Origin: Botryllus schlosseri
Taxonomy: Eukaryota
DNA length: 64,000 nt
Direction of reading: 5' to 3'
NCBI GenBank assembly: GCA_051294905.1
Contig: CM119383.1
Span: 6,262,001 to 6,326,000 of the forward strand
Both the position numbers and the translations under genes were made by a program. Shown in pieces: positions 2,660 through 43,150 of the stretch. The notes below the pieces were generated by a model, which saw only the letters and a program-made list of their open reading frames with translations, had not been told where the DNA came from and ran no database searches. Positions within the stretch are counted from its first letter, which is position 1, and every line of letters starts with the position of its first letter.

Positions 2660-4646
<1,987 letters not shown>

Positions 4647-6034: not shown

Positions 6035-7020
6035 CTGGTATATGTCGATTTTGACGGTGTTTCGCACCATGATAATTCTTGAAACTTGGTACGATATGTC
6101 GTGAAGGTAGTATTTAGCACTGCTCCAAGTTTCAGGCTTGCTACTCAAAGATAAGGGTGGTAATTTCGTTTCCGAAGTTCAGTGTGTGCTGATCTATCAT
6201 GTACATTGTACAGCAAACAGATTTTACTCAAAAGCCGGTATTGGTCTCCATTGATTTTGACGATGTTCCATACCGAGATCGGTCATGATATTTGGCACAG
6301 TAAGTCTTAATGTTAGTATCGACCGCTGTAATAAGTTTTAAATTTGTCACTGAACTATGTGGGTGGTAATTTCGTTTCCAAAGTCGAGTGAGAGCTGACT
6401 CTTCATTTATCGCTAACAGATTTACGCAAAACCGTTATTGGTCTCTATTGATTTTAACGATGTTCCATACCTAGATCTGTCATGAGCTTTTGCACGGTAT
6501 GTCTTGATTTTAGTATCGAACGCGGTGCCAAGTCTTAAAGTTGACGCTCAATGATTGAGGCAGTTATTTCGTTTTCGAGGTCCAGTATGGTAGAGATGCG
6601 CGCTGATCTGATACTTAGCCTACCTACATCATTGCGGATCTCACGGAAAAGCCGGTGTCTGTCTGTGCTAATCTAGTCTGCGTTCCATAACGAGATCGGT
6701 GATGATATTTCCAATGGTATATCTCGATGATCGCATGAAACAGCTAACTAAGATTCTCGGTTTGCATTCAAATATTCACATAATTTTATGTTCGCCAATG
6801 TGCATTTCACTGTGAAATTGTGGCCTTCAAACCATTTGCTTACAATCCCCTGTCAAATGCGATAGCTATTTCATTTTCGATGTCGGGTAACAGCTGATCA
6901 TTCGATCAGCCTATTCCTCGATCTATTTTACTCAAAGTTCGGTGTTCGTCTGTTTGTATTGATTTTGACAGTGTACCATGCCGGAATGGGTTATGAGATT
7001 GCGAATGCTACTTCTCGATG
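6035..7020. repeat. Diverged tandem repeat, about 5 units of 200-290 bp
   Basis: Recurrent core resembling CCGGTATTGGTCT..ATTGATTTTGACGATGTTCCATACCGAGATCGGTCATGA near 6040, 6233, 6431, 6651 and 6940. Confidence 0.7.
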
Positions 7021-8204: not shown

Positions 8205-10638
8205 CAGACATGGGGTGATTACTTCATGATTGTAATCGATTGCGATTACGATTACTTCTGAATGACGCGATTACGATTACGATTACAGCAAAATCAGGAA
8301 GTAGTCGATTACGATTACATTGGAAAAGTAATCACGATTACTCACGATTACATTTAATTTGCATCTTGGAAGCTATGTTGGAAAACAATATATGGATTGT
8401 TGGTTACGTCATAATGTACCCATTGCCGATTTTTATAGAGTTCAATTTATCGCACCCAATGATTTGCATTCTTGCCAGGGCCATAATTGCCGCACCTCAA
8501 ATTTCCCAATAGGGTGGGGAGTGAGCTCGAAGGGGGCTCAAAAAGTATTTCGTAAAGCAACATAAGTTATAGAGTATTTTCGAGAGATCTAAATAACTTG
8601 AAAATCCTCTCTAGATCAGTGATTCCCAACCGCGGCTCCCATTGACGTTGGAAAATCCAACAAAAATATTATAAAATCAATTTAGAACAAATAAAAAAAT
8701 TGATATTAAATAATTACACTTGCTTGGCTTAGAATCTGGAGTTTATAATCAAGGGTGGAGACCAATTCCTTTGCTGTCGAGTAGCGATTCTCTACTCAGC
8801 AACGATTTCGTTACTGAACTCACGTCAAAAAGTATGCTTACAGTCAAATGCGTTTGGATCGTCACTCAAATTTAAGTGTGCTCATCATCAGACTTAATTA
8901 GGTGCAGGTGGTGTTCCAACCCGTTTTACAACGCTATCTGACCATCAAACCAATGGATCATTTGACTTGATTGTTAAGTTGAACGGCCGCATTGACGGAA
9001 TGAATGTTTTTTTCCCCATGATGAAAATATTTTCATGTCCTAATGCAGTTAATGTGGCCACTGACCACGGTAATTTACAATTTGAGTTGCTACACATACA
9101 TTCAGATATAAAAGACATGACAATTTGTTTGTGCGTCTCACGAAAGTTTTTCTTCTAGTCTGCTACGCTTGAGCCGCTACAATATCGTTTGATTATATAA
9201 CAAATTATATACCTCACGAATTAACAACATACACTAAAGTAATTATAACAAAATACCAGAGGTTATAATTATGAATTACGTGCCCCCAGCTCTACATGTA
9301 GGTAATTGTGTGTCGAGATAGCGCAGTGGTATAATCCACGGCTACAATGCCATTGGGTTTCGGGTTCGAGTCCGACCGAGGTCGACTTCAGAATTCCTTT
9401 CTAAGTGTTGGAGGTTTATCTAGGCTTCTCGTCGCCGCCTCATCCGCGTAAGCGGTGTCTTACAATAAGCCTAGAAGTGGACCGTGCTACAATTCGGCAG
9501 ATACGGAATCAAAAATGCAGAAAATCGCCTGGTGTAACTGACCGTTGTAGTCGACAAACACCAAGATTACCTCAAACAAACAAACTCTACAGGATCTGAC
9601 CATCGGGAGCTGAGAGAGGATTAAAAACAAAAGTAATATAATGCAATTTTCGACGAAATTCAGTCTTCAACTTGCGATTACCACCCTATAGGGGACGTCT
9701 TGCTGTTTTGGTCCTGATTCCGCTGCAACCCATGCTAAGATGATATATAAGCATCATGATATATAAGCCCATGGCCATGGCGGCAGGTCCCAATGTTGAG
9801 TAGAGAATTGTGAAATACCGGTTGGCGCCCTTTCAAGTAGAGTCTCATGAGAATAAGACGAAGCGAACATAAAAAATTCTGCCTTCAACTTAATACAGAT
9901 ATTGTACTGCAAGCGGCTGTTACGAGAAACGGCAAACACGGCTCGGTTTTGATATATATATATATATCACCAGCTGTTGATTTTTACTGCTTCGTTGTGG
10001 AAATCGCCATGTTTTATTTGACGAGTACAAAATTTCAAATCTTTGTCCGGTGTACGTACAGGTACGTACTATAGATAGGCCTACTGCTCGCCAAGCAGCT
10101 ACGGTCAAATTGCGTTTAACTAAGCATAAGCATAACCAAACATCAACCATAAGTTACTATTTGAAACTAGGCATAGCGGAGATAAATTATACTGCTGCGA
10201 GGTAGTGGCGTGTGGAACGTGTTGATGACCTGATATACAGCACGGCGGGTGTTCTTACAATGACACTAATGTACGACGTACGTACACCGAATATCTATTT
10301 AGTGTGGATACTTCTTACACAATGACGTGCAAAGCTAATAGGCTGTTTCTGACGTAATAATGAGCTGTGGCGTATGAAAATCAGACGTTTGTGCTGTCGC
10401 GAGCCTGGTATAATATCTCTTCCTTGTTCACGAATGTTCAGTTTATGTCATAGTCCTTGCAAAAATAAAAAGTAATCGTTCTTTCACAAAGAAATCGATT
10501 ATATATGGGAAGTAGTCGATTACGATTACGATTAATTCGGAATTTTTTCGAATGTAATCGATTGCGATTACGATTACTTGAAAATGCTGTAATCGTCGTA
10601 ATCGATTACGATTACTAATCGCGATTACCCCATGTCTG
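8205..10638. mobile_element. Non-autonomous hAT-type DNA transposon with GATTAC subterminal repeats
   Basis: TIR CAGACATGGGG / CCCCATGTCTG, exact 8-bp TSD GTTGCCAT (8197-8204 and 10639-10646), GATTAC arrays at both ends, nested SINE inside, no transposase ORF. Confidence 0.85.
9312..9570 (+). mobile_element. tRNA-derived SINE, near full length
   Basis: Head with box A TAGCGCAGTGG and box B GGTTCGAGTCC. Body (CTAGAAGTGGACCGTGCTA...CCTGGTGTAA...GTCGACAAACACCA) recurs at 39039-39265 (-), 42247-42378 (+), 42681-42722 (-) and 45520-45598 (+). Confidence 0.8.
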
Positions 10639-17957: not shown

Positions 17958-19170
17958 TTCTAAACAGTTTGCGGCACGCTGACGCCAAACATGATTTTCC
18001 ACAGTTTGCATACATCATATTACCCGTGCCTTGCCCAGCTCATCGTAGCTTATCCTTATCGTTTCCAGCATGTTGTTCCATTCTCCGTTTTATCGGTAGT
18101 GTTGCTAACGCCAGGTTTGTTGCTTTGCTGCTGACGAAGCATTGATGAGTAGCAATTAGCTTAGCAGATTGAATACGAAACCACTGTGAAAATATTGGCA
18201 TGACACGTAGTATAATTTGCTGCAGTGATTACTGCGAGTGTGAGTGCTGTTTCGGTCCTGATCTAATCTGTACTGTCGAGTATGCAACAGCTAAACGTCT
18301 GGCTGGAATTGAGACGTGTATTCCTGTGACTCCTAACGAATTTCAAACTCCAACGCAGGGGCGTCAGCAGGCTACTTCACCAATCATGAATGTCATGGTC
18401 TTTGGGCCGCAAAATTGCAATAACTGAATCTGTCACAGTCCCCTTGAGCGTTGCAAATGGCACTCACGATGCTGCGGTACCCCGATCGGGTAACGCTGAG
18501 AAGGACTAAAAATATATACATATAAATGAATATGCTGAATTTGTACATAGATATTTTTAAATAATAATAATAACCTGAAAGTTTACGCTCTGTCGATTCA
18601 CCTTCACCTGTGCAAGATTGTAGTGTTTTCCGATGTTGACTTTGAAGTCTTGCCATCATCGGTATCAATTTTCAATTATGTGTGGCCTTCCAACTAAGGC
18701 CACGTTATTCATATGCGACCCGCTTGGCTATGAGTTTGCACAGTGCACACTCATGCGATAATTCGTAGTAGTATGACTGCCGTTTAGTTCTTTATATTTA
18801 TTTCAGTTGTTAAAATCATCTAATTTACGGCAGGCACACGACATCTCTCACTGTGACACCGAGGGCGAGAGGAATACGGAAACTATACCGATCAGCGTCA
18901 AGGCAACGGAATGCGCCGCTGATGCAGGTTGAAGCGATGGCATTGAAGACTTCGATAACCGCATTTGTTATATCCAGCCGTGTCAGTTTAGTCCTTCATC
19001 GCAAAACCGTCTGCAGGCAAACCGTAATGTGGTTAGTCTGGCGCAAAATTCATTATAGGAAACAGCAAACCGCCCAGTTATTTTCATGTTAGAGTACGCA
19101 CTCACCTTCAACTACCTGTATTTTCGCAGCCGACTCGCCTCTCTCTCCCTCCGGGCCTCAACTCTTCGAA

Positions 19171-19257
19171 GGTGTCTGAGCTGAGATTCGAACCTGCGAC
19201 CTTGGTGTCATGCCAGCTGCGCTCAGTTGACGCATTAACCAACTTCGCCAACACGCC
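19171..19257 (-). ncRNA. Pol III-type small RNA-like unit A (87 nt)
   Basis: Minus strand GGCGTGT-TGGCGAAGTTGG (box A)...GGTTCGAATCT (box B)...GACACC; ends complementary. Confidence 0.5.
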
Positions 19258-19374
19258 GACGTGAGGTCGTGAACGTTGTATGCATTTGTACTTCCACTTG
19301 CACCGGTCGGTGTAATGCACAGAATTTCATTTCAAAATACGGATGTTATTGATGAGTGTGCCTTCAGCTGACAG

Positions 19375-19460
19375 GGACTCAAGCCGAGACTTGAACCTAG
19401 GCCGCTGTGTCACGCCACGCCACCATGCTGGATGCAATAACCGGCTTCGTCAACACGTCC
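19375..19460 (-). ncRNA. Pol III-type small RNA-like unit B (86 nt)
   Basis: GGACGTGT-TGACGAAGCCGG...GGTTCAAGTCT-CGGCTTGAGTCC; GGAC/GTCC and AAGCCG/CGGCTT can pair. Confidence 0.5.
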
Positions 19461-19578
19461 ACGTGCACTGCACGCGTGTAGGTTGTATGTTTTTGTACTC
19501 CTACTTGAGTCGGTGCACGAAATTTCTCTTCAAAAGGTGACTGCTATTGTCAATGTGAAGTATACCTCGAGTTGAAAC

Positions 19579-19664
19579 GGACATCGGCCGAGACTCGAAC
19601 GTAGAACGTTGGCGTCACGTCACTTCCATTAGACGGACGCACTAATCAAGCTCGCCAACACGCC
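19579..19664 (-). ncRNA. Pol III-type small RNA-like unit C (86 nt)
   Basis: GGCGTGT-TGGCGAGCTTGA...CGTTCGAGTCT-CGGCCGATGTCC followed by GTTT; TGGC-GAG pairs with CTCGGCCG. Confidence 0.5.
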
Positions 19665-19776
19665 GTCGCGAAGTTTGAGTGTAATTATACTCCTACATAC
19701 CTGAGGGGATTGCTTTAATACATTTAAATTTGATTCAAAATATGCCAGATTTTATCAAGCGGTTGTTGAGAGTGAA

Positions 19777-19837
19777 GTCACTTCAATCGGATTCGAACGT
19801 GGGCGTTGACCGACTCCGCTAACTCTGCAGACACAGG
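19777..19837 (-). pseudogene. Internally deleted unit D of the Pol III-type array
   Basis: Box B CGTTCGAATCC intact, box A-like sequences present, central region missing. Confidence 0.35.
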
Positions 19838-19946
19838 GAGATTGTATGTATATCTTTATATCCTTGCTTAGGACACTGTGTCGGGTGGGAATAAAATTCA
19901 AAATATTCCAATTATTTCCAATCTTGGGACTCTTGGGACACTAGGA

Positions 19947-20032
19947 AACGTACGCGGACGGGATCGAACCTGGGGCTCCCGCGGCACGTTGGCCGGTCCA
20001 GCTGGGAGTTCAGCCAACTACGCCAACACGCC
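19947..20032 (-). ncRNA. Pol III-type small RNA-like unit E (86 nt)
   Basis: GGCGTGT-TGGCGTAGTTGG...GGTTCGATCCC, central CTCCC/GGGAG stem, ends in ACGTTT. Confidence 0.5.
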
Positions 20033-20118
20033 GACGTGTAAACACTCGCGAGTCGTGTGTTTGTATTTCTACTCGAGCCTATGGGACGGAAATCTTAACT
20101 GTGCGAGTGTACGTCGAC

Positions 20119-20204
20119 CTAGGAAATGGTTTTCACTCGGGGCCTCTTTGTCACCCCGGTTGCATGTGAAATGTGAACGCATTCACTATCTGCGCCAACC
20201 TGCC
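20119..20204 (-). pseudogene. Degenerate unit F of the Pol III-type array
   Basis: Box A TGGCGCAGATAG and GTGAA/TTCAC hairpin present, box B lost. 3' boundary approximate. Confidence 0.3.
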
Positions 20205-20309
20205 GGCTACGCTAGGTTGTATATATTTGCATCAGGCGCTTTAAACTATTAAATTGAAAAAATATATCACTCATGTGGACTTAAAGCCACGTTGTTGCTA
20301 GCTCTAAAC

Positions 20310-20382
20310 GGTATTCGGGGCAAGACTCGATCCTGGGCCTCATAAGCCACGCTGCCAACATTCCTAACTCCGCCAACTCACC
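20310..20382 (-). ncRNA. Pol III-type small RNA-like unit G (73 nt)
   Basis: GGTGAGT-TGGCGGAGTTAG...GGATCGAGTCT-TGCCCCGAATACC followed by GTTT; GGT/ACC terminal pairing. Confidence 0.45.
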
Positions 20383-20504
20383 GACGTGTGGATTAAAGGA
20401 TATCCTCATGAGAAGGTCACTTTATTCTACATATAAATTCAAAACATAATAATCTCGACAATTCGTAAACATTTTATGGACTCTATGCCCAAGTCGTCGC
20501 CAAT

Positions 20505-20590
20505 CCTAGTAAGCCTGGACTAGAAAACAGGGCCCTCGTGCCGCGACTATTGCGTTAGCTGAGTGCAATAACCAACTTTGCCAATTCACC
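20505..20590 (-). pseudogene. Degenerate unit H of the Pol III-type array
   Basis: Box A TGGCAAAGTTGG and TATTGC/GCAATA stem present; box B decayed to TTTTCTAGTCC. Confidence 0.35.
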
Positions 20591-20723
20591 GACTTGGATT
20601 TTTGCGGCCGGTGTGTATCTGATTCAGTCGCTTTATCACTCGTCGATTCAATTCAAAATATGCCATTTCTATCATTCATGTAGTGTGAACCTTGAGCCCA
20701 CGCTGACGTCAATAGTAGGAAAG

Positions 20724-20797
20724 GGATTCACGGCGGGACTCGAACCTGGGTCTAATGCATCAGGCCTGATGTGGTAGCCGAATCCGCCAATGCATCC
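20724..20797 (-). ncRNA. Pol III-type small RNA-like unit I (74 nt)
   Basis: GGATGCA/TGAATCC and GGCGG/CCGCC form a panhandle; box B GGTTCGAGTCC; central palindrome CATCAGGCCTGATG; followed by CTTT. Confidence 0.5.
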
Positions 20798-22433
20798 ATG
20801 TGTTGATTTCAATATGTTGTATGAATTATTACTTCTGTACTTGAGCTTGACACTTTATCGTACGGAAATCCAATTAAATATATGTCAATTCTAGTCACAC
20901 ATGTTATCCTGAGCGCAGGTGAATGATGGTGATCCCTATACTAAGGAGTACACTATTGTGCTGAGATCAAAACCTGCAGGGTGCAGCATCACACTGACTG
21001 CATTATTTGATCATTCCAACTCAGAGATAGTAGATGATATTTTACTCGTATTACCTGAACGGGCGCTTTATCGTGCGCCCGAGAATCAACTCAAAATATG
21101 GCAGTCTTGATCTTGTGCTCATGTAAACCATAACACTATGAAAGAATGAAAACATCGCATTAACCTGAAAATAGTTCTACACACCGTTTCATCTCCCACG
21201 AAAGCAACTTCTCTAACTTCAAAATTAACCTCGATTTTATCATGCATCGAAAGTGATTCGCGGAGAAATAAATAGTGTTTATACCAAAGCGATGGTTTTG
21301 AATATGGTTGTACTGGGAGATACTGTGAAAGAAATAGGGACTACAACTTGTGTAGGATTGAAAACCGACAGAAGAGTACCACGGGGATGTGTGACGCAGT
21401 GAAATGCCGTGTTCGAAGTCTTTTGAACGGATATTACATCAATCTCTGTGTAAATATTGGCAAGTCGTGCATGACTTCTGTACAGTGGTTTCTCTGCAAA
21501 CTTCTCCAAAACTATGGCTTCCATGCACAAATTCACATAAAGTAGTGGCATATTTGCGCAGATATCTGAAAATCATGGGCTCTCCGTACCAATTTTTGCT
21601 GATATGTGGCCACCGTGCACTGCACAACTTTATGGCAATCGTGCCTCTGCACAACTTTTCGGATACTGTGCCCTCTCTGTACATGTACATTGTACAAGTT
21701 AGTGGATTTGTGACACCTCTGTACAAAATTTATCAAATCGTGGCATCTATATACAAACTTCCGCCCAACCGCGACCCCTGTGTTTAAATTTTCGGAAATT
21801 GTCGCCTCCGAACAAAATTCCGGAAATAGCAGTCTCTCCGCACAATGTATCAGTAATCCTTCCATATATTTATCGAAACTACCTATAAGTATCTAATATC
21901 TATACATAATTTACTCATATTAAACAATTGCACAATTTTTCTTCTGCAAGAATTCTGATTTTTAATCACGCTTCAAGTTTTTCTTACGTATAGATATTTC
22001 TGTTTTGCCGGTTTTATTTGAGATGTTCAAAAGAAGCAGAGTTAACTTATCTTCTTATATGTGAACCTTTAGCGAGGCGGCGATGATTTCCCCACCATTG
22101 CCAGGCGAAATACAATACTAGGATTGGCCGCATCACGTCACTCCGTCGTGGGTGATGCCTGCAAATATGTGGCGTGGAATTCGGTCTGAATACAAACAGG
22201 AAGAAATCGCGCTGTTACGGTCGATCGCACAGTCGCGTGCCTCCGGCTCCGAGAAAGCGAGGACTTTTCAAGTTCTCTGGTCGTGATCGGAAGTCTCAAC
22301 TCATGTTCATCGCGAATTGCGGGATTTTCTGAATATTTGTCGACGTTTTTCAGTTGTCCTCCTTTTCATTTAACAAGTAGGTGGTAATTTTGCAGATTGC
22401 AAAATCACGCAAGTGGTAATTACAAGATGTAAC

Positions 22434-25400: not shown

Positions 25401-28400
25401 CGGGCGGTGTGAAGAACTGTCGAAAATGTAGATGTATAGTGGACATTCTCGATTACGTAGGCCTGTGGGAAAATCGTACAAATAAACCCAACGCAAAACA
25501 ACTATTTCCGAAAAACGATCTATCATTTGACTGAAAAAGAGTTTGGCGTGTGCCGGCTTGATATTCCGTAGCTACGTCGCGTTCACAACGTTAATGAAAT
25601 CGCGTCAGTGATTCATAACTTGGTAAATCCCTCGCCCTGCGATGAGGGTGGAACTGCCGAAGACTTGACCTAGTTCATCTCGAGCATATTGCAGATTGCC
25701 GTAATGTAAGGCTAAATAACTCAATTGTGACAGAGAGGTACCACGGTTTCCTGACGAACGGGCATAACCCATTTGTCCTCAGCCGTGAAAGTGTTGTTCG
25801 GTTCTTTAGATCTCATGTAGATAGGCACATTTCTGTGGAAGAATATAGACTTCCTATAACATCTCAGTACCTCGTTTATCTCGAAAAGGATTATAAAAAG
25901 AGAATGAACTGGTATTAAGTGGACATATCCCCTTTATGATAATTTTAACGTGTAATGCGAATATAACATGGCGATCTGTGCTATAATGTGCGATGTCCAT
26001 TGATTTTGTGCGTGGTATATTGGAGTCGACGGGTAATACGCATGCACGACAGTACGTGAGGAGATAGAATGTATTCACATTGAAAGTATTAGCGACTTGA
26101 AATTTTTGGTAAAGAGTCGAGTTTTTGTGTTGTCAGAACAAAAACGATCGCTCTTGCATAGACGTATGAATGAATGCGTTATTTTGTTCATACGGTTCAA
26201 AGGGCACAAAACAACACAACGGAATAAGGCGCTAGGACTGGATTTTGGTTGAAATTTAGATCAGAAAAATTCTCCTGTATTAATTCGCAATTGCCTATGG
26301 GTATTGATTAGCATAGCATAGCAAGCGAGTGGGGTTTAGTCAATATTATTCGACTGACGATTTATGTTTCATATTTATTTGCGTTCCTCGCAGGCTACTC
26401 AATGCTTGTAACAATATTGAGGTATATTGTGGTTAATTTCTGCATTTGGATATAATTAGTAGAAAGGCGATATTTTTCCGATGTTTTTTCCATGCGTCAC
26501 AGACTCACGGGATGTACCGCGCTGTTTCCCAACTATCCATGAATTCCGTAATAGCGTGTGGTACGATAGGTTAAATTGTAACTATCGTTTCGATATATAG
26601 CCAAATGATCTTGCGACGCGATTACAGGTTGTAATATTTCTAATCCGGGTCCACTGTGAGACATGTTAGATCTTGATTATGTTTCTGATCCCGATAGCAT
26701 TTCCGTATGGGTTTGGTTACTTGCGGAGCATTTCTTCTGCGAAAATATGCGCTATCGCGATTTAGAATGTGTCGTCTACATATATGCCGCTTCCGCTTGC
26801 GGATCCGTTGAAATTGTTAATAATAAGTCACCCGCGGTCGCTCTCGAACAAGGCAACGTGAAATCTCCATAATCTATGATAAGTGACACTTACAAGCACT
26901 ACCGATCTCGAAATCTCGCAGAAATTGCGGTGTGCAGGACTGTGTCACATCCGGTGTCGCCTCGGGCCGGCGCTAGGTTAGCGTATTCGTTATCAGGGTC
27001 GATTCGCGGAGGTGGAAAGTCTGATGTTTATAGGATAAAGTAGAAACATTTCCTATTCAAATACCTGAGCAACGTATCAACCTGCCCGAGGGCTTAATTT
27101 CTGAAGATAACATTATACGAACGTTAAATTCTATTTACTTTGCTTCAGAATCGCGGTGCGAAAAATGGCTAGTTCCCAGGATCTATTAACGAGGATAAAT
27201 GAAGAGTTTTTGACTTGCCAAATCTGCTTCGAAAACTATACCTGCCCGAAAAGTCTTAACTGTCAGCATACGTTTTGCAAGAAATGCCTGCAGGAGTACT
27301 TCACTCCCAACTCTACAACGTTGCAGTGCCCAACGTGCAGATGCATGCAGCAGATGCCGAGCGGCGGGATCCAGGACTTGAAGGACAATTTTTTCATTTC
27401 GAGCATGTCAGACATGCTGAAGACGGTGAAAGAGATTAGGAGTGACGACAAAAACAGCTCGTCGTTGCTGTGCGACACATGCGACGAGGATTGCCGAAAG
27501 CCGGCTATGTCGCGATGCCTTGACTGTACCGACTTTTTGTGCAGCGATTGCTCCCTTTGGCACAGACGCACGAAACTCACTCGCGGCCACAAAATCGTTT
27601 CCCTAAAGGAGTTTGAATCGGGGATTCACAACGAGGAATTGAAGAGTAGAGCGAAGATATACTGCACGGTAAGGTTACCATGAATAGAACCGTGGGAGTA
27701 TTCGAAGGGAGAATCGTAAACGTGATGTATCCAGCTCGTCGAGTGTTTTGTTGTTAGCGTCGCAACTGTTTAGTATCAATTAGATCGCACTAACCGCTGA
27801 GCGGGTACGTAGCATTATGTTTGATAATAGCACTTAGTAAAATTGTGTAGGCGATTTCTTCATCGTACAGGTAATTCGTCAAATACACGGCTAGGTATAT
27901 GTAGCTAGAATTAATTATGTTCCACCCACAGCGTTTTAACGTCGCTATTGTGTACGATGTTCGGAAGCCATGTGTTTCAATGCGCTACCCAAAATACGTT
28001 GGTTTTGAGGGAATTGAGTATGTTTATGATCTCACGTTTTGCGTAAATGACCCTGTACCACCTCTAAAAGAGCCCACTGTTGACAAAGATTATTTTGCAG
28101 CCTGATCCTGCTGCCTATCATGTCACGTTGTATATATTCTATTACAAGTAAGTCAGTAATAGGATTATCGCCTGTTATGGAGCCTTAAAATACTCAGGAA
28201 TCACGTTCAACAAGGTGCTTTGTTCGTGTCAATTTATGGCGTTCCTTCGATCATTCAGACGGTTGTCAGTGAATTCGGGACTTGGCCACTTTGGCATTGG
28301 AAATGTACTATAATAAGCGATGCATCAATATTGGATTCATAAATTTGAACATGCATGTTTCACTAAATATGAGCGTGAATGGTGATATACGGCACTTGGT

Positions 28401-34400: not shown

Positions 34401-37400
34401 ATGGGCCAGGCATATGAATATTTATTATTGTTGCTGTCTTTTCCTTGTTTAATACCGCTGTAAGCATCGCGGGCACATTGCGATAGGTTGTTATCAGAGA
34501 CATCCTGAAGTAATACGTTGCTCTTTCAGAGGAAGCAAGAACTAATCGACGAGGTTCGCTCCATGCAACAAAGCGAAGAAAAGCAAATTGATGCCGACTC
34601 GGACGCCGTGGAAATGCAAATAAATTCACTGGTGTCATGTTCCGAGTTTTCAAAGAAGGTATACACATTATATATATGCGTAAGATTAATCATAGACAAT
34701 ATATACACACATATGAAGATTTAGATATAGATATAGCGGATCCGAAGTAAACCAAAGTAGAATTTGACTATGACTGTGTAAGTGTGTAATTTAGGCGTTC
34801 AATACTACGATACATCCCATTCCGAATTATAGCGATGCGGTATAGTTAATCGTCGGATTATTTCAGCAACGATGCCGCGATTATCCAGAAAATCTTTTAA
34901 CCTTAGCTTCCGGACGCGGTAACGTTTTAATCTGATTTGTGGCGTCGGGTTGCTCTGAACCGTATGAATCATAACCCGAGCCGGCCGCTGTATATAATGA
35001 TCACGCATGATATACGGTGTATGCTGGCTATGTTTCTTGACATCTGTCGGTCTCGCTGTTGCCACATCAATAGCATTTGACTTGCACCTGATATTACTCA
35101 ACTCGATGGATGTAGACGCTGCGTGGTTTATTAATTAACAACAAGGAGTAGTGAAAAGAGAATTGAGCTGGAGGCCACGGCAATACTTTCATCTTCTCCG
35201 ATGAATGACGAACAAGCACTTGCACTTCTGACACCGCATTCGAATTGTTGATCCTAATCCCGACATAATCGACTGGGTTATTTTGAAGAGATGACGACTA
35301 CGTTTTAGCATGATATTTTCACGATTTCATAAACCGTTCCCCCAAAAGCGCGCTTTGCCCTTTATACTCTATAGAGATCAAAAGTTATCAATTCATCAAC
35401 TGCTAACTGGATGTAGCTTAGATCCAGTTTGCCCATTGGTCAAAACAACCAATGTGTATAAAATCACATTTCTGCAATTAACTGAATTGGCAAATTTGGA
35501 AAATCGAGTCTATATAATAAACCAGGGGCGGGCAACTTCTACGGTCGGCGGGCCTGATATGGTAAAATGAAGCACTTGACGGGCCGGAATACAGAATCGA
35601 TACATTACGCGTATTTATTCACCTATACAAGGAATATATCGTATTTAATGTAAACTTTAAGTTTAAAGCATAAAGAGACCATTATTTAACGAATATATTA
35701 ATCTAATGTACTTTAATAGCTGTTGAAGTCAATCAGGTATCTGTGGTCGATCAAAGTTTTAACAAGTTCTTTGGTCTCTGGCTGTATGTCGGATGACGAA
35801 ACACTCAGACTGCACGTGGACATCAGCTGTATTGGAACGTATCCTTGTCTTGTTCATGTTCATGATCGAAAATGTTTTCTCGCAAATGTATGTAGACTCG
35901 AACAGAACAAAGTTTCATGACCACCTGTCTCAGGTTGGCAAACTTGGGTTCATTCTGTGACGCATATGATTTGTCAATACTTTCAGATTAGAATTTCACT
36001 TCCAGGGTAGAAATTCTCTGCGGGACGCTCAAAATCCCGACGTGGGCCGTATGTTCCCCGCCCTTGCAATAAACTATAATCCTTAGATTTCCCTGTCGCT
36101 GTGGACGCCAACAATGTTGCAGTAAATCGTCTGTAACGCAATTTAATTTGACTCGACTTTATACTTGTTTCCAAGATTCCAATATCACTCCGTTCCTTGA
36201 AAGGTTTTAGAGTACGGGACCCCAAAGGAAATTCTGGGCTTGAAAAACCAAATGACACACATGCTGAAACAACTTCTCGAGACACACCCGGTGGAACAAT
36301 ATCACAAAGACAACAGAACTGAACAAACGGAATACTTGTTCAACGGCGGCAACGCGGAAGAAATCGACGACATTTTCGGAAAGGTCGGAATCGTATCGAA
36401 GCCGTTTCCCGACAGCGTTGAAAAGGTAAAACAGGATGATCTCTTTACAGCTGTCACATAACGTGTGAGGCGTGAGTACGTCACGAATTCGCCAACCGCG
36501 CCATTGAAATCGCAGTCGTAGTGTGGTCTTATTTTCATTAATGTTTCTTTTTACTCACATGTTTGTGTCTACAGACTCGTGTGTTCGTGTGGTCATTTTT
36601 GTTTGTGCTAATGTCATTCTACGTCTCAACACGCGTTCGTGTGCGCGAGAACGATCATTTTCGTCGCCAGATATATGTCGTAGGGTACGGTGTCCTGTCA
36701 ATACCGAGAAAACCATTACCGAGAATGCCATTACCGAGAACGAGAATGGTCATTACCGAGAATGGACATTACCGAGAATGGACACCACCAATAATGGACA
36801 TTACCGAGAATGCAATATATGGAATGCAGGCATGTTATGCATATGAACAGGTCGTGTGTGTGCATCACGGCGTTGCCACATTCGGTGTCGATGCCCTGGT
36901 ATAAATTTCTTGGCAATGTCAGTCCCAGGAAGCTATTTTCTTGACATTGGCCATTCTCGGTAATGTCCATTCTCGGTAATGGTATTCTCGGTAATGTCCA
37001 TTTTCGGTAATGTCTATTCTCGGTGGTGTCCATTCTCGGTAATGTCCATTCTCGGTAATGTTCATTCTCAGTAATGGTTTTCTCGGTAATAGTATAAAAC
37101 CGTAGGGTACATCGGTTCCTTTTCGTATTATCATGTTTCGTGACCGCATATGGACTTAATTCTGCCGACCTATATATAGCTAATTGACATATCGTTTCGC
37201 ATCGTGACCTTTGTATATAATGTCCGCTAATAGATTTTGTGTCGGTCATTATTTGGACGTGGCGATATCAGAGTAATATAGGCCTATAGGAACGTTCGTG
37301 TGTGCCTACTGTAAGTGAGTGAATTCCTGGTTATTATTTCATAGGTCCTCCGGAGTCTCGACACCTTCTGCGCGAAATGCCCGCTTCCTTCAAAGTCTAT

Positions 37401-40400
37401 TAGCGAAGATATGCCCACGAAGGAATGCGTGGAGATTAACCTAATTCAACAGGTAAGTCAAGATTTCCAGTAATAAAGAGCGGACTAACACTCTGAACTA
37501 TCTCATGTTCATAAATCAACTGCGGATAACTCCATTTAGCAAGTAGGAAGTTCTCACAAAGTTCTTACTGGGGTTAAGTTCCTGTAAATTGAAAGTTATA
37601 ATTTATATATTTCTTAACAAAAGATGAGGAACACTTACTGATCCACCTTTATTATAACACAAGTTTAAAGACACCGTATAGAACAAAAATTGCTTGCGAT
37701 GTAGAGAAGTAGGCACCTCACGTTCACACCATCCCTAATATATAGTGCCAGGGAACAAAATCGCCATTCTTTAAAATCATTGAGCAGGTTCGTATCTTAC
37801 GACAATTTTGTGCGTCACGAGCAATTACGCGCATCCGTAGTTATATACCTGTCTGAGAATAAAGACATCAACGCCGAGCTGTTGACCAACGTCTGCTAAT
37901 CCTGCATTGTATTCCAGCTGGGTAAACAAGGTGACGAAGACGGCGAATTTGAATCGACCCCAAACCTGGCTGTCAACTCCGTGGGGGAAGTAATTACATC
38001 CGACACGGACGGGTGCAAAATACAGATATTCGATCCTATCGGAAGGTTCAAAGACGCTTTCAAGACTGAGGTTAGACTTATAGCTTAAATGAATAGTACA
38101 TCGAGTTGTTACCCAATGACTCAAGAAATGATCTTAACATCATGGTCGCATTTCGGGTGACCAAATAAAATTATTGAAAACTTAACATACATATCGTAGT
38201 AATTTTTCCCGCTTAAGACCAGTTGCAGAGATCTTTCGTGTCCATTATTACGTGAATTAATTGTGACTTTCAATAATGATTAAGAACTTTGTATTCCGCT
38301 ATACCAAAACCGACCGATTTCTACAACCATAATATTATTATTATTATTATACACTTATACAGCCCAACATTGATGCTACATAAAGTCAATACAGATCGCA
38401 CGAATTCCTTAATGTTTGCTTACAGATTTGTAACTTCAGTAGTGAAGTTCGCTTCGAATTGACCTCCGAAATATAATTGAATTCCAACCTTTGCATTTAA
38501 GGTTAAAGGAAAACGCTTGCACCCGTCGGGTGTTGCCGTACTGCGCAATGACGACATTGTGGTCTGTTGCGAGGACCAGATCTACGTGTGGACTTACGAA
38601 GGGAAGTTGCTGCAAGGCATCGGGAAGGGATTTTTCACGAACTGCAACAGCGTCGTTGTCGATTCGAAAAACAGGCTTATCGTCTCCGATATCGCGCAGC
38701 GAGCCGTGCTTATTTTCGAGTGAGTTCCTTATCGCATTGATCGTGTAGATGGGCGTGCGACATGATAACCGCGATTGTCGGCTGGATGAAAAGTCACAAC
38801 ACATACGGCGATTTATGATTCACGAGTTCATTCGTTCCTTGTGTTGACGAAAAAAGTTTTCAGCGTCAACATTGGAAGTCACAACTGGTATACGTTATCC
38901 GACACAAAGCTATTGTTCTCAGTATGATGGCTGTGAACCGCGAAAGAACAATTGGCCACTCGCCACAAGTGTCAAATTAGAGCAGGGGGATAGTTCATTC
39001 GTTACCAATTCAGTAAATTAGTTGTTGTTTGTGGCATTCATGGCGTTTGTCGACTACTATGGTCATTTACGCCAGGCCAGTTTTCTTCATTTTCATTCCG
39101 TAGCTGCCGACTTGTAGCACGGCCCACTTCTAGGCTTTTATAAGACGCCACTTACAAAGATGAGATAGCGAGGAGCCTAGATAAACCTCCAACACTTGGG
39201 TAGAAATTCTAGAATCGACCTCGCAACCCATTGGTGTTGCAGCTGTGGATTATACCACTAAGCTACAGTGTTGGGATGACTCGAGTCATGACTTGACTCG
39301 AGACAGACTCGAGTCACATTTTTCGTATGACTTGACTTGACTCGAGTCACTTTGCTAAAATGACTTGACTTGACTTGACTCGGCGTATGTGGATTGACTC
39401 GTGACTCGGAGCAAAATTCACGAGTCAATTTCGAGTCATCAAGCAATCCATGTCGATAAAAATCATTGTATCTTGCATATGTTCGGATTGTACGCGAAAC
39501 GCTGGTGTAACCCGTGAGAACGACCAATCATTCAATGACCGTGCGTTTTTACTGAACCTCCGTTGTTCTCTCACAAATAAATTGACCGCAAATGAAGTGA
39601 TCTAAGCTTACCGCTTACGCTGTCGTAATCTAATAGCAAAATGTGTATTTCTGTTCTCTGCTCTTACCTTGACTAAACCTCTTGTTTTATTGAAATTGAA
39701 TTCCAATATCGTTTATATAGTCCTCAAACCATTGGCACAGGCTAGAATTGTATCATATCAGTTCGTAAATGGGTAATGTATCGCATCTTATCAATTCGTT
39801 TCTCTATTCTCTATTTTGGCTGGTAACTATAATCCGAGGCTATGCAATTACGTAGTTTAGCATTTCTACGTATATATATGTGAGCGATAAAACGCCTTCA
39901 TGAGTTTATATTTAACTCTATATTCGTTTATAGGTCCAGAATCAATGACCACTCAGTCTGTATTTCAGACAGCTAGCAAAATGCAATGACGTAAGCATGC
40001 CTCTTACTTAGAAAAGGCAACTTGACTTGAATTCTGACTTGACTCGTGACTTGACTTGACTCGAGTCACCTCGAAAAATCGAGTGACTTGACTTGACTCG
40101 AGTCACCTTCGAAAATCGATTGACTTGACTTGACTCGAGTCAAAATCTGCAATGACTCGAAATGACTCGTGACTCGAAGGTAGTGACTTGATCCCAACAC
40201 TGCTAAGCTATCTCACCACTATGCAAATTAGTATTCCAGTTGGTGGCCGGGACGTGGGCAAAATAATACAAGAACGAGATAACATCACAACCACATTCCT
40301 TACGTAACCAAAGAACATGACTTTACAGACACATTCATGACGTAACGAAAGAACATGGCGTCAAAACGCAAACACCGATATTTTCGCGGGTAAAATGGCC

Positions 40401-43150
40401 TTTCCCCGGCATAGCCATGAGCAGCTGGATTGAGCGAACCCTAAATTCAAATATCCGAGCTGTTGGGAGTTGGGCCCTGTTGCGTTGCACACCGCCACCA
40501 TTGATTGTAACAACAGTGTGCAGACATATTCATTCGGTTTCAGATCTGACGGTACTTTCGTATGTAAATTTGATGGGAGCGAAAACGGGTCGACGGGGAA
40601 GTTGGTGGAGCCGCGCTACGTGACGTGCGATTCAAAAGATAACATCATCGTATCCGACGCTGGAAACTGTAGCGTCAAAAAGTTCAATAAAAAGGTAAGT
40701 ACAGAGGTGGTCAAAGCAACACTAATCATGCAAATTTGCACTGAATTATAAGTGAAAGTATCGATTTCATTTTCTAGATAAGCATACTTTTAGTACAAGT
40801 AGATAGCGGTTTCAAAGTACTCAAGTAAGTAGTTTGAAAAAGTAGATGTAGTCGAGAGTGCTTTTAGTGCTGAATCATTGGCATTGAAGTATCAATGATC
40901 GCGACCGATCCAAAATCACTGACGGCAATGAGATAAGAGAACCTTTCGAAAAATGATTCGGCTCTCAGGAAACAGGAGCTATTTCACTCGGTTTTCATGG
41001 CAATTTCAATTGAGAGAGCGATGAAAACCTATCCCAAAATTATTTTCTATACTTTAGGGGTTTGGCTTTGCTTCAAAATCTGTAAAGTGAAAGTGGTCTC
41101 AAGGCATAACCAGTCGACTAAGTATCGAAAGTAGGCCAAGCCTACTAGAGTAATCCAAAAAGTAGAAGTACCTTGTTGCTGACCATATCTGGGTAAGAAG
41201 GACAGAAAATGGTGCACGACGGCGCTGTGTGCACACCGGGTATTCTCAAAATCGATTACTCTCGTAATTACCTGGTCGTTCCTTAAAATTGAACAAAAAC
41301 AGTACTAATGCCGTCGCTGTCATTTTATCAGGGGGAACTCCTTCGAATGTTCGGCGAAGAAGGCTCAATGGAGGGGCAGTTTCAAGGGCCGCGCGGCATA
41401 TGCACCGACGAGTATGACAATATCATTGTCGCCGATTGCTGGAGTCATAGAGTAGACGCGTTCACGCCGGAAGGCAACTTTATGCGCCATCTTATATCAG
41501 GTAGATGAGTAATGATGAATAATTGCCAATTTCAATAATGGTATGGTCATTCATAGCCGGTTAACACCGTGTTCTTTAATTTAAGGCGCCGATGGTCTCC
41601 ACTTTCCGTGGTCGGTAGCTATGACATCATCCGGGAGAATGATGCTTTCCGAAGATTACAGTTGGGTCGTGAAGATATTCTCGTTGCCAGGTATGTACAT
41701 TAACCCACGGTTTTAAAATACGAAAATTAGCGCGTGTCATGGCAAACTGTTTTCACAAAATACTTGATATGATGTTGTCATTATCAGAATATCGAGGGGA
41801 CACCCCACCTCCGGATACCGACAGCGACGTTACGTCTCCGGTTACGCTGATTCGAGGGTTGGAATTGATGCACGGGCAATTCGACATGGCGAACATTAAC
41901 AAACTTTCAAGATGGCTGAAGTCATCCACGAACGAGGCCGCCAACGACCACATATGTAAGTGGGAGTATACTTCATCGGGCACTGCTATCGATGACTATA
42001 TTCGTAAGGATATGTGACTATTCTGTGAGCATGTTCTCTTCCCTATCGACGCGATGGTGAACCGTGAGTCAAAATTACGACAGTCTCTTAGCCGCCAGCC
42101 AGCTTTTTATGCCCGACCCAAACTATAGTGGTACAGGTATCAAACCGGTGCCCATTGTCCGATATGATTGAAATATATAGGCCACCGTTACTCATCTAGG
42201 GATGAAATTACGCCGATAGAAGTGATATAAAAATACGTACATGCCACGTGATCTGCAAAAGCGGTGTCTTAGAAAAGTCTAGAAGTGGACCGTGCTATAT
42301 AAGTCGGTAAATACGGAATCATAATACAGAATATCGGCCTGGTGTAAAACGACCAATGCAGTCGAAACACCATGATTATCATAGACAACATATACTTGTA
42401 TAATGTTTGCGATATATATGACGGTCTTCAAACAGAACTGATTACAGATTGCTAACCCATCGTAGGTTTGTAATCTATAGAACTGATTGGACACGACTTT
42501 ACTCAACCCATAAATATGAAATAGATCTCATACTGATAGCAGGATAATGTCGTCGAACCCATCCTAATCTAGGCACATTATAACACCACGGCCCCATTCT
42601 ATTAAAAAGTATAGACCTGGCGAAATCCAGTACGCCGATTCAACCCAAATTTATGTGCAACCGTTGTTGTTTATGGTAGTCATGGTGTTTGTCGACCACT
42701 ATGGCCATTTACACCAGGCCAAGTTTCTTAACAATGTACATTGTACAACCGTGATAGCCAAACTATAGGTTAGCCAATAACGTTTGATTAACTCTCTAGC
42801 GTTGGTTTTGTAAATATATTTAGTTTTTATCGTGAGGCGCTGTCATAAGTCAGAAATTGATTGCGTTAATTCTGATATTATTCGATAATCATATTCCTTC
42901 TTTCTCTTTCGAAGGGAGAAGTTTACGGATCCCGAACAATCCTACCTACCAGGATCGCGAGAAACCGATCAAGCCCGCTTCCAGAAGCAAATCCTTCACC
43001 AACGACTCCTATTCCCGCGAACATTTCTCCCTTCAACGGCCATCAAGGCAAACTCGCGCAAGCGCCAATGACTCTTCCGCGCCATTTCAACTGTCTCCCG
43101 ATCCCTTCGTGTTGGACGATGGTAATAACGGGATATCTTTAGATGAATGA
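22434..43150 (+). CDS. TRIM-NHL family E3 ubiquitin ligase (RING, B-box1, B-box2, coiled coil, 6 NHL, C-terminal tail), 845 aa
   Basis: Coding exons 22434-22498, 27149-27668, 30621-30755, 33419-33577, 34530-34658, 36204-36425, 37345-37452, 37918-38070, 38502-38719, 40544-40694, 41332-41500, 41586-41690, 41788-41955, 42915-43150 total 2538 nt, all phase-compatible. C3HC4 RING (CQIC..CQHTFCKKC..CPTC), two B-boxes, NHL motifs such as GQFQGPRGICTDEYDNIIVAD. The first exon and the exon 3 donor are the least certain parts. Confidence 0.92.
23894..24572. mobile_element. hAT-type MITE (CAGTGGTG ends), older copy in TRIM intron 1
   Basis: First 190 bp and right end (CAATCGTAGGGCCACCACT) closely match 45611-45955. 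No TSD match. Confidence 0.7.
28388..28570. repeat. Short interspersed element with central telomere-like (GGTTAG-type) repeats
   Basis: Degenerate GTTAGG run flanked by unique arms. Similar elements at 51987-52217 and about 58293-58552 (inverted). Confidence 0.55.
32400..32670 (+). pseudogene. Decayed non-LTR retrotransposon reverse-transcriptase fragment
   Basis: Translates TNTIFII and TYVAFINFK (32490-32516), resembling the LINE RT motif IF..RQ..EK...YxAFIDFxKAFD. Frames are broken. Confidence 0.35.
36686..37104. mobile_element. MITE with inverted arrays of a 16-bp repeat (CATTACCGAGAATGGA)
   Basis: Repeat array on + at 36705-36815 and inverted at 36950-37092; ends TACGGT / ACCGTA (possible TA target). 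Confidence 0.75.
39039..40217 (-). mobile_element. tRNA-derived SINE interrupted in its head by a MITE
   Basis: Reverse complement of the 9312 family at 39039-39265; the head resumes after the insertion (TCTCACC, 40211-40217). Confidence 0.75.
39266..40202. mobile_element. hAT-type MITE with GACTT/GACTCGAGTC subterminal repeats
   Basis: TIR CAGTGTTGGGAT / ATCCCAACACTG, exact 8-bp TSD CTAAGCTA (39258-39265 and 40203-40210). Confidence 0.9.
40702..41191. mobile_element. hAT-type MITE (CAGAGGTGGTCA family) next to a TRIM splice donor
   Basis: TIR CAGAGGTGGTCA / TGACCATATCTG, TSD GGTAAGTA (40694-40701) / GGTAAGAA (41192-41199). Confidence 0.75.

Follow-up and report, generated by a model that had tools for sequence, protein, structure and literature searches.

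To our knowledge, the Pol III transcriptome of tunicates is little known beyond tRNAs, 5S, U6, 7SK and 7SL. The primate snaR and rodent 4.5SH RNAs are encoded by tandem, lineage-specific arrays of Pol III small-RNA genes derived from other Pol III templates, and the mascRNA-type RNAs provide a further tRNA-like Pol III comparison. snaR is described as a tandem family of Pol III small RNAs (PMC3045588), and in the tRNA-miRNA units of murine gammaherpesvirus 68 a tRNA-like element drives Pol III transcription of a trailer located downstream (PMC4337559). In tunicates, direct tandem tDNA clusters are common, and vault and Y RNAs have not been identified (PMC5006418). Vault RNAs (vtRNAs) are reported to have a conserved handle that does not vary in length (PMC9179338).

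We compared these systems with a tandem array in a stretch of 64,000 nucleotides of Botryllus schlosseri DNA, hereafter the window. Like tandem tRNA clusters and tRNA pseudogene arrays, its units lie head-to-tail at ~200 bp, have their boxes at tRNA positions and an acceptor-like terminal stem, and possess a D-loop and a T-loop that are tRNA-like in sequence. Unlike the members of such clusters, the units have broken stems in the D, anticodon and T arms and no cloverleaf, and two to three nucleotides more than usual separate the T-loop from the 3' strand. Both ARAGORN and the Rfam tRNA model draw a blank on them; the copies, which are not homogenised, share only 44-67% pairwise identity. With the vault RNAs (RF00006) the units have in common a candidate Pol III type 2 promoter with upstream elements, the arrangement in a small cluster, a variable centre and the pairing of the ends. 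However, their handle is short, unconserved and in differing registers, their 3' end is not followed by a T4, and they do not match the vault covariance model. The array recalls snaR and 4.5SH in being young, lineage-restricted, tandemly amplified, equipped with putative internal Pol III promoters and apparently derived from a pre-existing Pol III gene, but those arrays are highly homogeneous and experiments have demonstrated their RNAs, whereas the present one is very diverged and its RNAs are putative. Finally, like the gammaherpesvirus 68 tRNA-miRNA and mascRNA types, each unit would consist of a non-aminoacylatable tRNA-like body with boxes, followed by further sequence before the terminator; here, unlike there, the trailers (45-55 nt) have no conserved hairpin and the tRNA-like fold is not kept. 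The proposal of the first-pass annotation, that of a tandem family of tRNA-derived, non-tRNA units with Pol III-type internal boxes, is supported.

Organisation of the array and its promoter-like elements

The array occupies positions 19157-21115 on the minus strand and comprises ten head-to-tail repeats with periods of 172-230 bp, each made of an upstream block, a tRNA-derived body of 52-87 nt and a trailer. The DNA on either side is unrelated to the repeat. A search with a repeat profile (nhmmer) recovered nine full repeats, with E values from 1e-22 to 1e-48, and the spacer of a tenth. The first-pass annotation had listed nine minus-strand units, and all nine are present at the 5' ends that it gave, the spacings between units A-I being 203, 204, 173, 195, 172, 178, 208 and 207 bp. 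Its count has to be extended by a decayed tenth unit, J, which can be aligned with the other nine; the 5' end of J is at ~21027, and the upstream spacer that belongs to it runs to ~21115. The mixture of intact and decayed members that the annotation described is also evident, four or five of the ten having visibly lost their box B, their 5' strand or their centre.

Box A (TRGCNNAGTNGG) is matched at 8-9 of 9 positions in units A, D, E, G, H and I and starts at position 8 or 9 of the unit, which bears out its earlier placing at tRNA positions 8-19. Box B (GGTTCGANTCC) is matched at 8-10 of 10 positions in units A, B, C, D, E, G and I, the same number of units, seven, in which it had been called intact or near-intact. 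The two boxes start 22-56 nt apart, a distance that would be workable for Pol III, and in consensus and spacing the predicted boxes conform to a Pol III type 2 promoter. Across the 64-kb window, box A-like and box B-like matches both outnumber those in all 100 shuffles, and they are clustered in the array.

The region upstream of the units also has a recurrent layout, with a TATA-like TACAAA..CATACAAC at ~-33 to -18, CAAGT at ~-43, ATAAAG at ~-60 and ATATTTTGAAT at ~-85, and CACGTC immediately precedes the first G of the unit. The block CAAGT..GTACAAA..CATACAAC, which includes the TATA-like element, lies at 19275-19301 (minus strand) upstream of unit A, with homologues at 19482-19508, 19675-19704, 19841-19867, 20052-20076, 20216-20230, 20816-20844 and 21029-21058. 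The ATATTTTGAAT motif, found at 19329-19340 (minus strand) upstream of unit A, recurs at 19527, 19732, 19895, 20252, 20436, 20650, 20872 (a degenerate copy) and 21088. It is absent upstream of unit E, where the spacer is devoid of both the ATATTTTGAA and the ATAAAG motifs. Beyond the preceding unit, the first T4 is that of ATATTTTGAAT, so this motif may act as a terminator, as an upstream element, or as both.

Five units look transcribable. Unit A (87 nt, 19171-19257; all units are on the minus strand) has the best-kept boxes, with box A at 9/9 and box B at 9/10. Unit B (86 nt, 19375-19460) has the terminal pair GGAC/GTCC, and AAGCCG/CGGCTT pairs its box A with the tail. Unit C (86 nt, 19579-19664) departs from the second haplotype in five places over 46 nt, and at three of the five the base of the second haplotype is that of the box A or box B consensus. 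Unit E (84 nt, 19949-20032) has good boxes and an 11-bp pairing of its 5' strand with the centre instead of the tail. Unit I (74 nt, 20724-20797) combines a perfect box B with a near-continuous panhandle of ~12 bp (GGAT.GCA.TGGCGG / CCGCC.GTG.AATCC, -16.9 kcal/mol).

The other five look dead or dying. Unit D (19777-19837) keeps its boxes and has an internal deletion of ~35 nt of the centre, and unit F (20122-20204) appears to be a dead copy that has lost box B (5/10). Unit G (73-75 nt, 20308-20382) has a shortened centre; it had been classed as intact and is polymorphic, 5 nt being deleted and 1 nt inserted in the second haplotype. In unit H (20505-20590), likewise an apparently dead copy, the decay of box B to GTTTTCTAG created an internal T4 at +64. 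Unit J (20950-21027) has its 5' strand deleted and its box B decayed to GGTTTTGATCT, with an internal T4.

Homology searches, end pairing and 3' ends

ARAGORN found no tRNA gene in the window, and at relaxed thresholds it returned spurious intron-containing calls only. We searched both the complete region and individual units against Rfam, using the gathering threshold as well as E<=10. At E<=10 the tRNA model failed to match any of the stretches of 2.3 kb, 331 nt and 121 nt, in agreement with the earlier view that the units are not tRNAs. The Vault model RF00006, the match suggested as a check on a vault-RNA affinity, likewise yielded nothing at E<=10, single units included, a model that may be insensitive outside vertebrates. 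The matches that Rfam did report (STnc320, ceN42, OmrA-B, sR11 and a viral pseudoknot) are due to chance.

By blastn and nhmmer, no copy of an array unit occurs elsewhere in the 64 kb. A true tRNA-headed SINE family has five copies in the window, all of which were recovered; its head aligns with the units only at generic tRNA positions. A tRNA-like element at 9319, considered as a member of the same family as the units, is a separate SINE. The whole set of contigs from a second individual gave just two further short matches at >=85%, at single-copy-like depth. On two of its contigs other than the array contig, the design of upstream motifs plus TTGGCAAAGTTGGTT recurs at a single-copy-like depth of 52-85, that of the array contig being 101. 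In the window and these contigs, the unit does not behave as a dispersed SINE, but single-copy-like loci of this design occur outside the array. A metagenome pattern scan with CGNCGGCGTGTTGGCG returned 120 loci, which we regard as chance matches in unrelated DNA because none fits the repeat profile. Homologues of a neighbouring TRIM-like gene (74-87% identity) lie on contigs that do not reach the array, these being 1.3-4.5 kb long and the array 6 kb away.

In the T-stems of the units no more than 1-4 of the 5 pairs persist, and the T-loop is followed by 13-15 nt, as had been noted (a mostly unpaired T-stem and more than 12 nt). The claim that each unit's own ends pair specifically has statistical support: cognate 5'/3' duplexes have a mean energy of -4.2 kcal/mol vs -2.4 kcal/mol for non-cognate combinations, an excess with permutation p values of 0.0002-0.003 across 16 window settings. 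Matched changes can be seen by eye at the ends of units B (GGAC/GTCC), I (GGAT/ATCC) and G (GGTG/TACC). The further pairing proposed between box A and the sequence after box B is real in units B and I, but its registers differ and it is not significant overall (p 0.17-0.30). Similarly, the centres described as hypervariable hairpins are indeed variable, but no hairpin is common to the units. RNAalifold found no shared fold (consensus -2.0 kcal/mol), single-unit folding z-scores are around 0 (range -1.3 to +2.1), and the 3' strand of the putative handle is the fastest-evolving segment. With the inner helix falling short of significance, the extended, vault-like panhandle is not supported in the form proposed for the family.

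None of the ten units has a T4 terminator right after the stem; the longest run there is a T3, which only units C, E, F, G and I possess. Six units have their first T4 at +98 to +140, unit A at +210 and unit F at +302, and in units H and J it falls within box B. The trailers, inspected for hairpins of the tRNA-miRNA or tRNA-snoRNA type, contain no shared hairpin and no C/D boxes.

Constraint, decay and competing explanations

The explanation that we prefer, and to which we give an even chance, is that the array is a lineage-specific family of tRNA-derived small-RNA genes for Pol III, some of them live and others dead. A single repeat of ~200 bp would have been duplicated in tandem and then subjected to birth-and-death evolution, with loss of the ancestral tRNA's D, anticodon and T arms and free drift of the centre. 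TFIIIC would bind the boxes and TFIIIB/TBP the TATA-like element. Pol III would start at the GG or a few bases upstream, read through the weak T3 that closes the tRNA-like body and stop at the T4 within the next ATATTTTGAAT, giving a primary transcript of ~100-140 nt. This transcript may be trimmed to an RNA of 73-87 nt ending in a short acceptor-like stem, a terminal minihelix that would suit recognition by tRNA-end-processing or tRNA-binding proteins.

Evolutionary rates were analysed on a 10-sequence alignment (A3) of repeats A-J. The box A and box B columns, fixed before the test, evolve more slowly than the background on the ML tree (0.23 and 0.24 vs 0.36 steps per lineage; p 0.004 and 0.02, respectively). 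The upstream block is also slower (p 0.011), for a motif picked after the data had been seen. A model with rate heterogeneity is preferred (2*delta lnL = 15.2), the heterogeneity being mild (alpha 3.2). Box A, box B and the complementarity of the 5' and 3' ends can be read as signs of selection. The unit-specific cognate complementarity would require compensatory change after the units diverged; this co-variation could date from an earlier functional period, and would then be silent on the present.

The strongest competitor, possible in our view though not probable, is that the array is a dead relic, an old tandem cluster of tRNA or tRNA-like genes that is decaying neutrally and whose features are leftovers of past selection, with TFIIIC at most still binding some copies. 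Such decay is compatible with the broken boxes, 5' strands or centres of four or five of the ten units, the indel polymorphism of unit G, the mildness of the rate heterogeneity, the lack of a consensus structure and of a terminator at the stem end, and the abundance of tRNA pseudogenes and tandem tDNA clusters in tunicates (PMC5006418). Polymorphism points the same way. The window was compared with one second haplotype, which yielded a list of 35 SNPs in the array and two further differences; SNPs are not depleted in the units (15 of 33 SNPs within 19171-20797, where the units make up 47% of the stretch), and the conserved columns, chosen by leave-one-out, show no significant depletion (4 vs 6.8 expected, p 0.17). 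Two bulk RNA-seq runs also gave 0 reads from the array, from a type of library that rarely captures small Pol III RNAs. However, the total tree length is 4.7 substitutions per site, yet box B retains at least 8/10 matches in 7/10 units and box A at least 8/9 in six. Neutral decay also sits poorly with the slower box columns, with the compensatory change that the end pairing needs, and with terminal branches two to three times shorter in intact than in broken units, the shortest belonging to the promoter-intact A (0.20), B (0.26) and I (0.26), vs 0.67 in F and 0.59 in J.

Another possibility, which we consider unlikely, would be that the units encode diversified Pol III RNAs built on a constant tRNA-derived promoter and scaffold with a variable cassette, or tunicate counterparts of the vault RNAs. 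In the first case, the shared part would consist of the 5' 30 nt, box B and the terminal minihelix, and a fast-changing central cassette of ~15-20 nt could provide, for example, guides, decoys or protein-specific ligands.

That the units are tunicate vault RNAs in the strict sense, namely RNAs of the vault particle that Pol III transcribes from box A/B promoters and that have a panhandle at their ends around a variable centre, is very doubtful, and their vault-RNA identity is unsupported. Their boxes and upstream elements, clustering, length of 73-87 nt, variable centre and end pairing would all suit such RNAs, as would the extended two-part or continuous panhandle of units B and I, and the slot may be open because homology search found no vault or Y RNAs in D. 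vexillum (PMC5006418). Nevertheless, the Vault model finds no match even in single units, the handle varies in sequence, length and register, in contrast to the conserved vtRNA handle (PMC9179338), the 3' end has no T4, and the box A region and T-loop are far more tRNA-like than a vtRNA needs.

The least probable explanation, a passive satellite from the head of a dispersed tRNA-derived SINE, is in keeping with the tRNA-headed SINEs of this genome and with the SINE-derived satellites described elsewhere (PMC10702118), but is countered by the confinement of the unit to the array in 64 kb in which the real SINE gives five matches, by the restriction of similarity with the SINE head to generic tRNA positions, by the two short, single-copy-like matches in the second individual, and by the promoter-like block upstream of each unit, which retroposed SINE copies would lack.

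Implications for tunicate Pol III genes

To conclude, the locus appears to be a tRNA gene cluster that is turning into something else, in which the cloverleaf has been lost and the promoter and the end stem remain under detectable constraint, with live-looking and dead-looking copies side by side. If no unit is expressed, the array would be a dated example of the slow decay of Pol III promoters in a dead array. The diversified-scaffold or vault-counterpart explanation, if true, would add a Pol III RNA class that is unannotated in the closest relatives of the chordates. If even one unit yields a stable RNA, the array would represent a new chordate-lineage family of Pol III small RNAs and a clean system for studying the re-use of tRNA genes.

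Extent and anatomy of the array

The array consists of ten head-to-tail copies of one repeat on the minus strand (about 19157–21115) with a period of 172–230 bp, and the sequence outside both ends is unrelated to the repeat. The first-pass annotation had described nine units (A to I, named from the lowest coordinates upwards), and a profile built from their repeats found all nine again (E 1e-22 to 1e-48). The same profile also matched the spacer portion of one more repeat (21036–21110), and reading and aligning the surrounding stretch revealed a decayed tenth unit, J, whose 5' strand is gone and whose box B now reads GGTTTTGATCT. A GGGCGC..GCGCCC hairpin lies in the spacer upstream of J, around its ATAAAG motif (21041–21092); Rfam returned only a chance-level match to it (STnc320, E 3.9).

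The tRNA-derived unit bodies are 52–87 nt long. Box A (TRGCNNAGTNGG) begins at position 8 or 9, and six units (A, D, E, G, H and I) match it at 8–9 of 9 positions. For box B (GGTTCGANTCC), seven units (A, B, C, D, E, G and I) reach 8–10 of 10, in agreement with the seven intact or near-intact copies counted earlier; F, H and J no longer have it. Upstream, the alignment shows CACGTC common to the repeats at −6 to −1, followed with increasing distance by the block CAAGT..GTACAAA..CATACAAC, whose TATA-like element spans roughly −33 to −18, then by ATAAAG (about −60) and ATATTTTGAAT (about −85). From this layout we infer a putative Pol III gene with internal boxes and upstream TBP-type elements.

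None of the ten units carries four T's directly after the terminal stem, and three T's stand at the stem end in C, E, F, G and I. Six units (B, C, D, E, G and I) have their first T4 between +98 and +140; in H and J it is part of the decayed box B, and in A and F it comes as late as +210 and +302, respectively. Since the T4 of the first six always falls inside the ATATTTTGAAT of the next repeat, this motif may act as a putative terminator, an upstream element or both. J, which has no unit before it, also carries the motif upstream, and the motif is missing after A; this fits a duplication unit starting at ATATTTTGAAT. The 45–55 nt trailers share no hairpin.

Pairwise identity of the units is 44–67% (median 51%, aligned columns), A and B being the closest pair, and the maximum-likelihood tree of the repeats is nearly star-like, its branches adding up to 4.7 substitutions per site. 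Such divergence argues that the array is old and has escaped homogenisation. It does not overlap any sizeable coding ORF. Among recognisable genes, the closest are actin exons near 2.9–3.9 kb (2878–3874, plus strand) and a RING plus B-box (TRIM-like) exon (27156–27683, plus strand). The second actin ORF loses its reading frame after the actin-like part, pointing to an intron or a frameshift. The nearest named relatives of the TRIM-like exon are amphioxus TRIM56-like and TRIM2, and homologues 74–87% identical occur on several other short contigs, which suggests a multi-copy TRIM family in B. schlosseri or a closely related species. The window also holds a 197-bp unit in about 1.8 tandem copies (6155–6574; 80–81% identity) and two 16-nt-repeat arrays in opposite orientation (36702–36812 and 36951–37090; CGAGAATGGACATTAC / CCATTCTCGGTAATGT), a foldback-type structure.

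Constraint and variation among the units

Four tests for selection on the array gave a mixed answer. One concerned the unit ends, for which unit-specific pairing had been proposed. Every 5' end was matched in turn with all of the 3' tails, which were set relative to box B and not tuned per unit. Between 5' nt 1–8 and tail nt 6–15, cognate pairs averaged −4.2 kcal/mol versus −2.4 kcal/mol for non-cognate pairs (permutation p 0.0006), and the advantage held over 16 window settings (p 0.0002–0.003). The matched changes can be read directly as GGAC/GTCC in B, GGAT/ATCC in I and GGTG/TACC in G, and unit A has GG.GTGTT with its matching partner. Because neutral decay from a common ancestor predicts no cognate advantage, these changes are taken as compensatory and as postdating the divergence of the units. 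For the helix proposed between box A and the sequence after box B, by contrast, the cognate test was not significant (p 0.17–0.30), and the register differs between B (positions 13–18) and I (positions 9–13).

Fitch steps counted per column on the maximum-likelihood tree were fewer in box A (0.23 per lineage; p 0.004) and box B (0.24; p 0.02), both defined beforehand, than in background columns (0.36; one-sided Mann–Whitney). The upstream motifs are slow too, but were chosen after the alignment was seen. The 3' tail (0.47) and the centre (0.43) are fastest. A gamma model beats equal rates (2*delta lnL = 15.2) with mild heterogeneity (alpha 3.2). Terminal branches measure 0.20, 0.26 and 0.26 in the promoter-intact units A, B and I, and 0.59 and 0.67 in the broken units J and F.

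A contig from another individual or haplotype spans the array in full; the two sequences are about 97% identical and differ by 43 substitutions and 23 gap letters over 2 kb. SNP density equals that of the flanks; 15 of the 33 SNPs listed for 19171–20797 fall in units, which make up 47% of that stretch, and conserved columns (leave-one-out) showed no significant depletion (4 versus 6.8 expected, p 0.17). This low-powered comparison thus provides no evidence of population-level constraint. Unit G, listed earlier as intact together with A, B, C, E and I, has a 5-nt deletion and a 1-nt insertion in the second haplotype; the mixture of live-looking and dead members stands. In unit C (19601–19646), five single-base differences are packed into 46 nt, compared with about 2% in the background, and at three of the five the second haplotype has the consensus base of box A or box B; the cluster could reflect gene conversion, transcription-associated mutation or chance. 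In two bulk RNA-seq runs labelled as the same species (6–13% of each was read), no read mapped to the array; small Pol III RNAs are rarely represented in libraries of this type.

Relation to tRNA genes, vault RNAs and SINEs

That the units are not tRNAs is borne out by several observations. ARAGORN found no tRNA in the whole window, its calls at relaxed thresholds being spurious and intron-spanning. Rfam gave no match at gathering thresholds and no tRNA or Vault match at E<=10 (2.3-kb region, units A plus B, and unit I alone). The T-stems keep 1–4 of 5 pairs, and 13–15 nt follow the T-loop, compared with 12 in tRNA. Single-unit folds have z-scores of −1.3 to +2.1 and no architecture in common, and the RNAalifold consensus of the seven better units (−2.0 kcal/mol, with a positive, penalising covariation term) lacks a 5'/3' stem.

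Vault RNAs, 88–143 nt long, are type 2 Pol III transcripts; their 5'/3' handle is conserved and constant in length, and their centre varies (PMC9179338). In contrast, the handle of the array units is short, variable and without common register. The covariance model finds nothing, and the terminator lies in the wrong place. Membership is thus unsupported, and so are the extended panhandle and vault label of the first-pass annotation. Vault and Y RNAs have so far not been found by homology in the tunicate D. vexillum (PMC5006418), so true vault RNAs keep a small probability.

A SINE-derived satellite is the least probable reading, since blastn and nhmmer found no other copy of the unit in the 64-kb window and the genuine SINE there is distinct from it. 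This dispersed tRNA-headed element of about 260 bp (9319–9579, plus strand) has canonical box A TAGCGCAGTGG and box B GGTTCGAGTCC, and its head, which ARAGORN does not call as a tRNA, aligns with the units at generic tRNA positions only. Including further copies or fragments at 39025–39265 (minus), 42243–42378 (plus), 42667–42719 (minus) and 45513–45577 (plus), it occurs five times in 64 kb at 76–83% identity. In the contigs of the second individual, two other short pieces match at 85% or more, at depths of 52–85 versus 101 for the array contig. Their unmatched flanks share the same design, with ATTTGAATCGAATTGAC..ATAAAG upstream and a GAGTTGGCAAAGTTGGTT box A. Together with the lack of other copies in 64 kb, these pieces suggest a family with a few further low-copy loci rather than an abundant retroposon.

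Tunicates typically have direct tandem tDNA clusters, which hold about 40% of the tDNAs of Ciona intestinalis and Botryllus schlosseri and 90% of those of C. savignyi; their tRNA pseudogenes number hundreds or thousands (PMC5006418). The most economical origin of the array is such a cluster. The earlier observation is confirmed, with ten units in place of nine. Its interpretation holds in part: the tRNA-derived family of Pol III type stands, and so do the co-varying ends. A functionless relic is the strongest alternative, with a lower but substantial probability. Our preferred reading, held with about even confidence, is that of a birth-and-death family of putative Pol III small-RNA genes, at least some members of which would be active.
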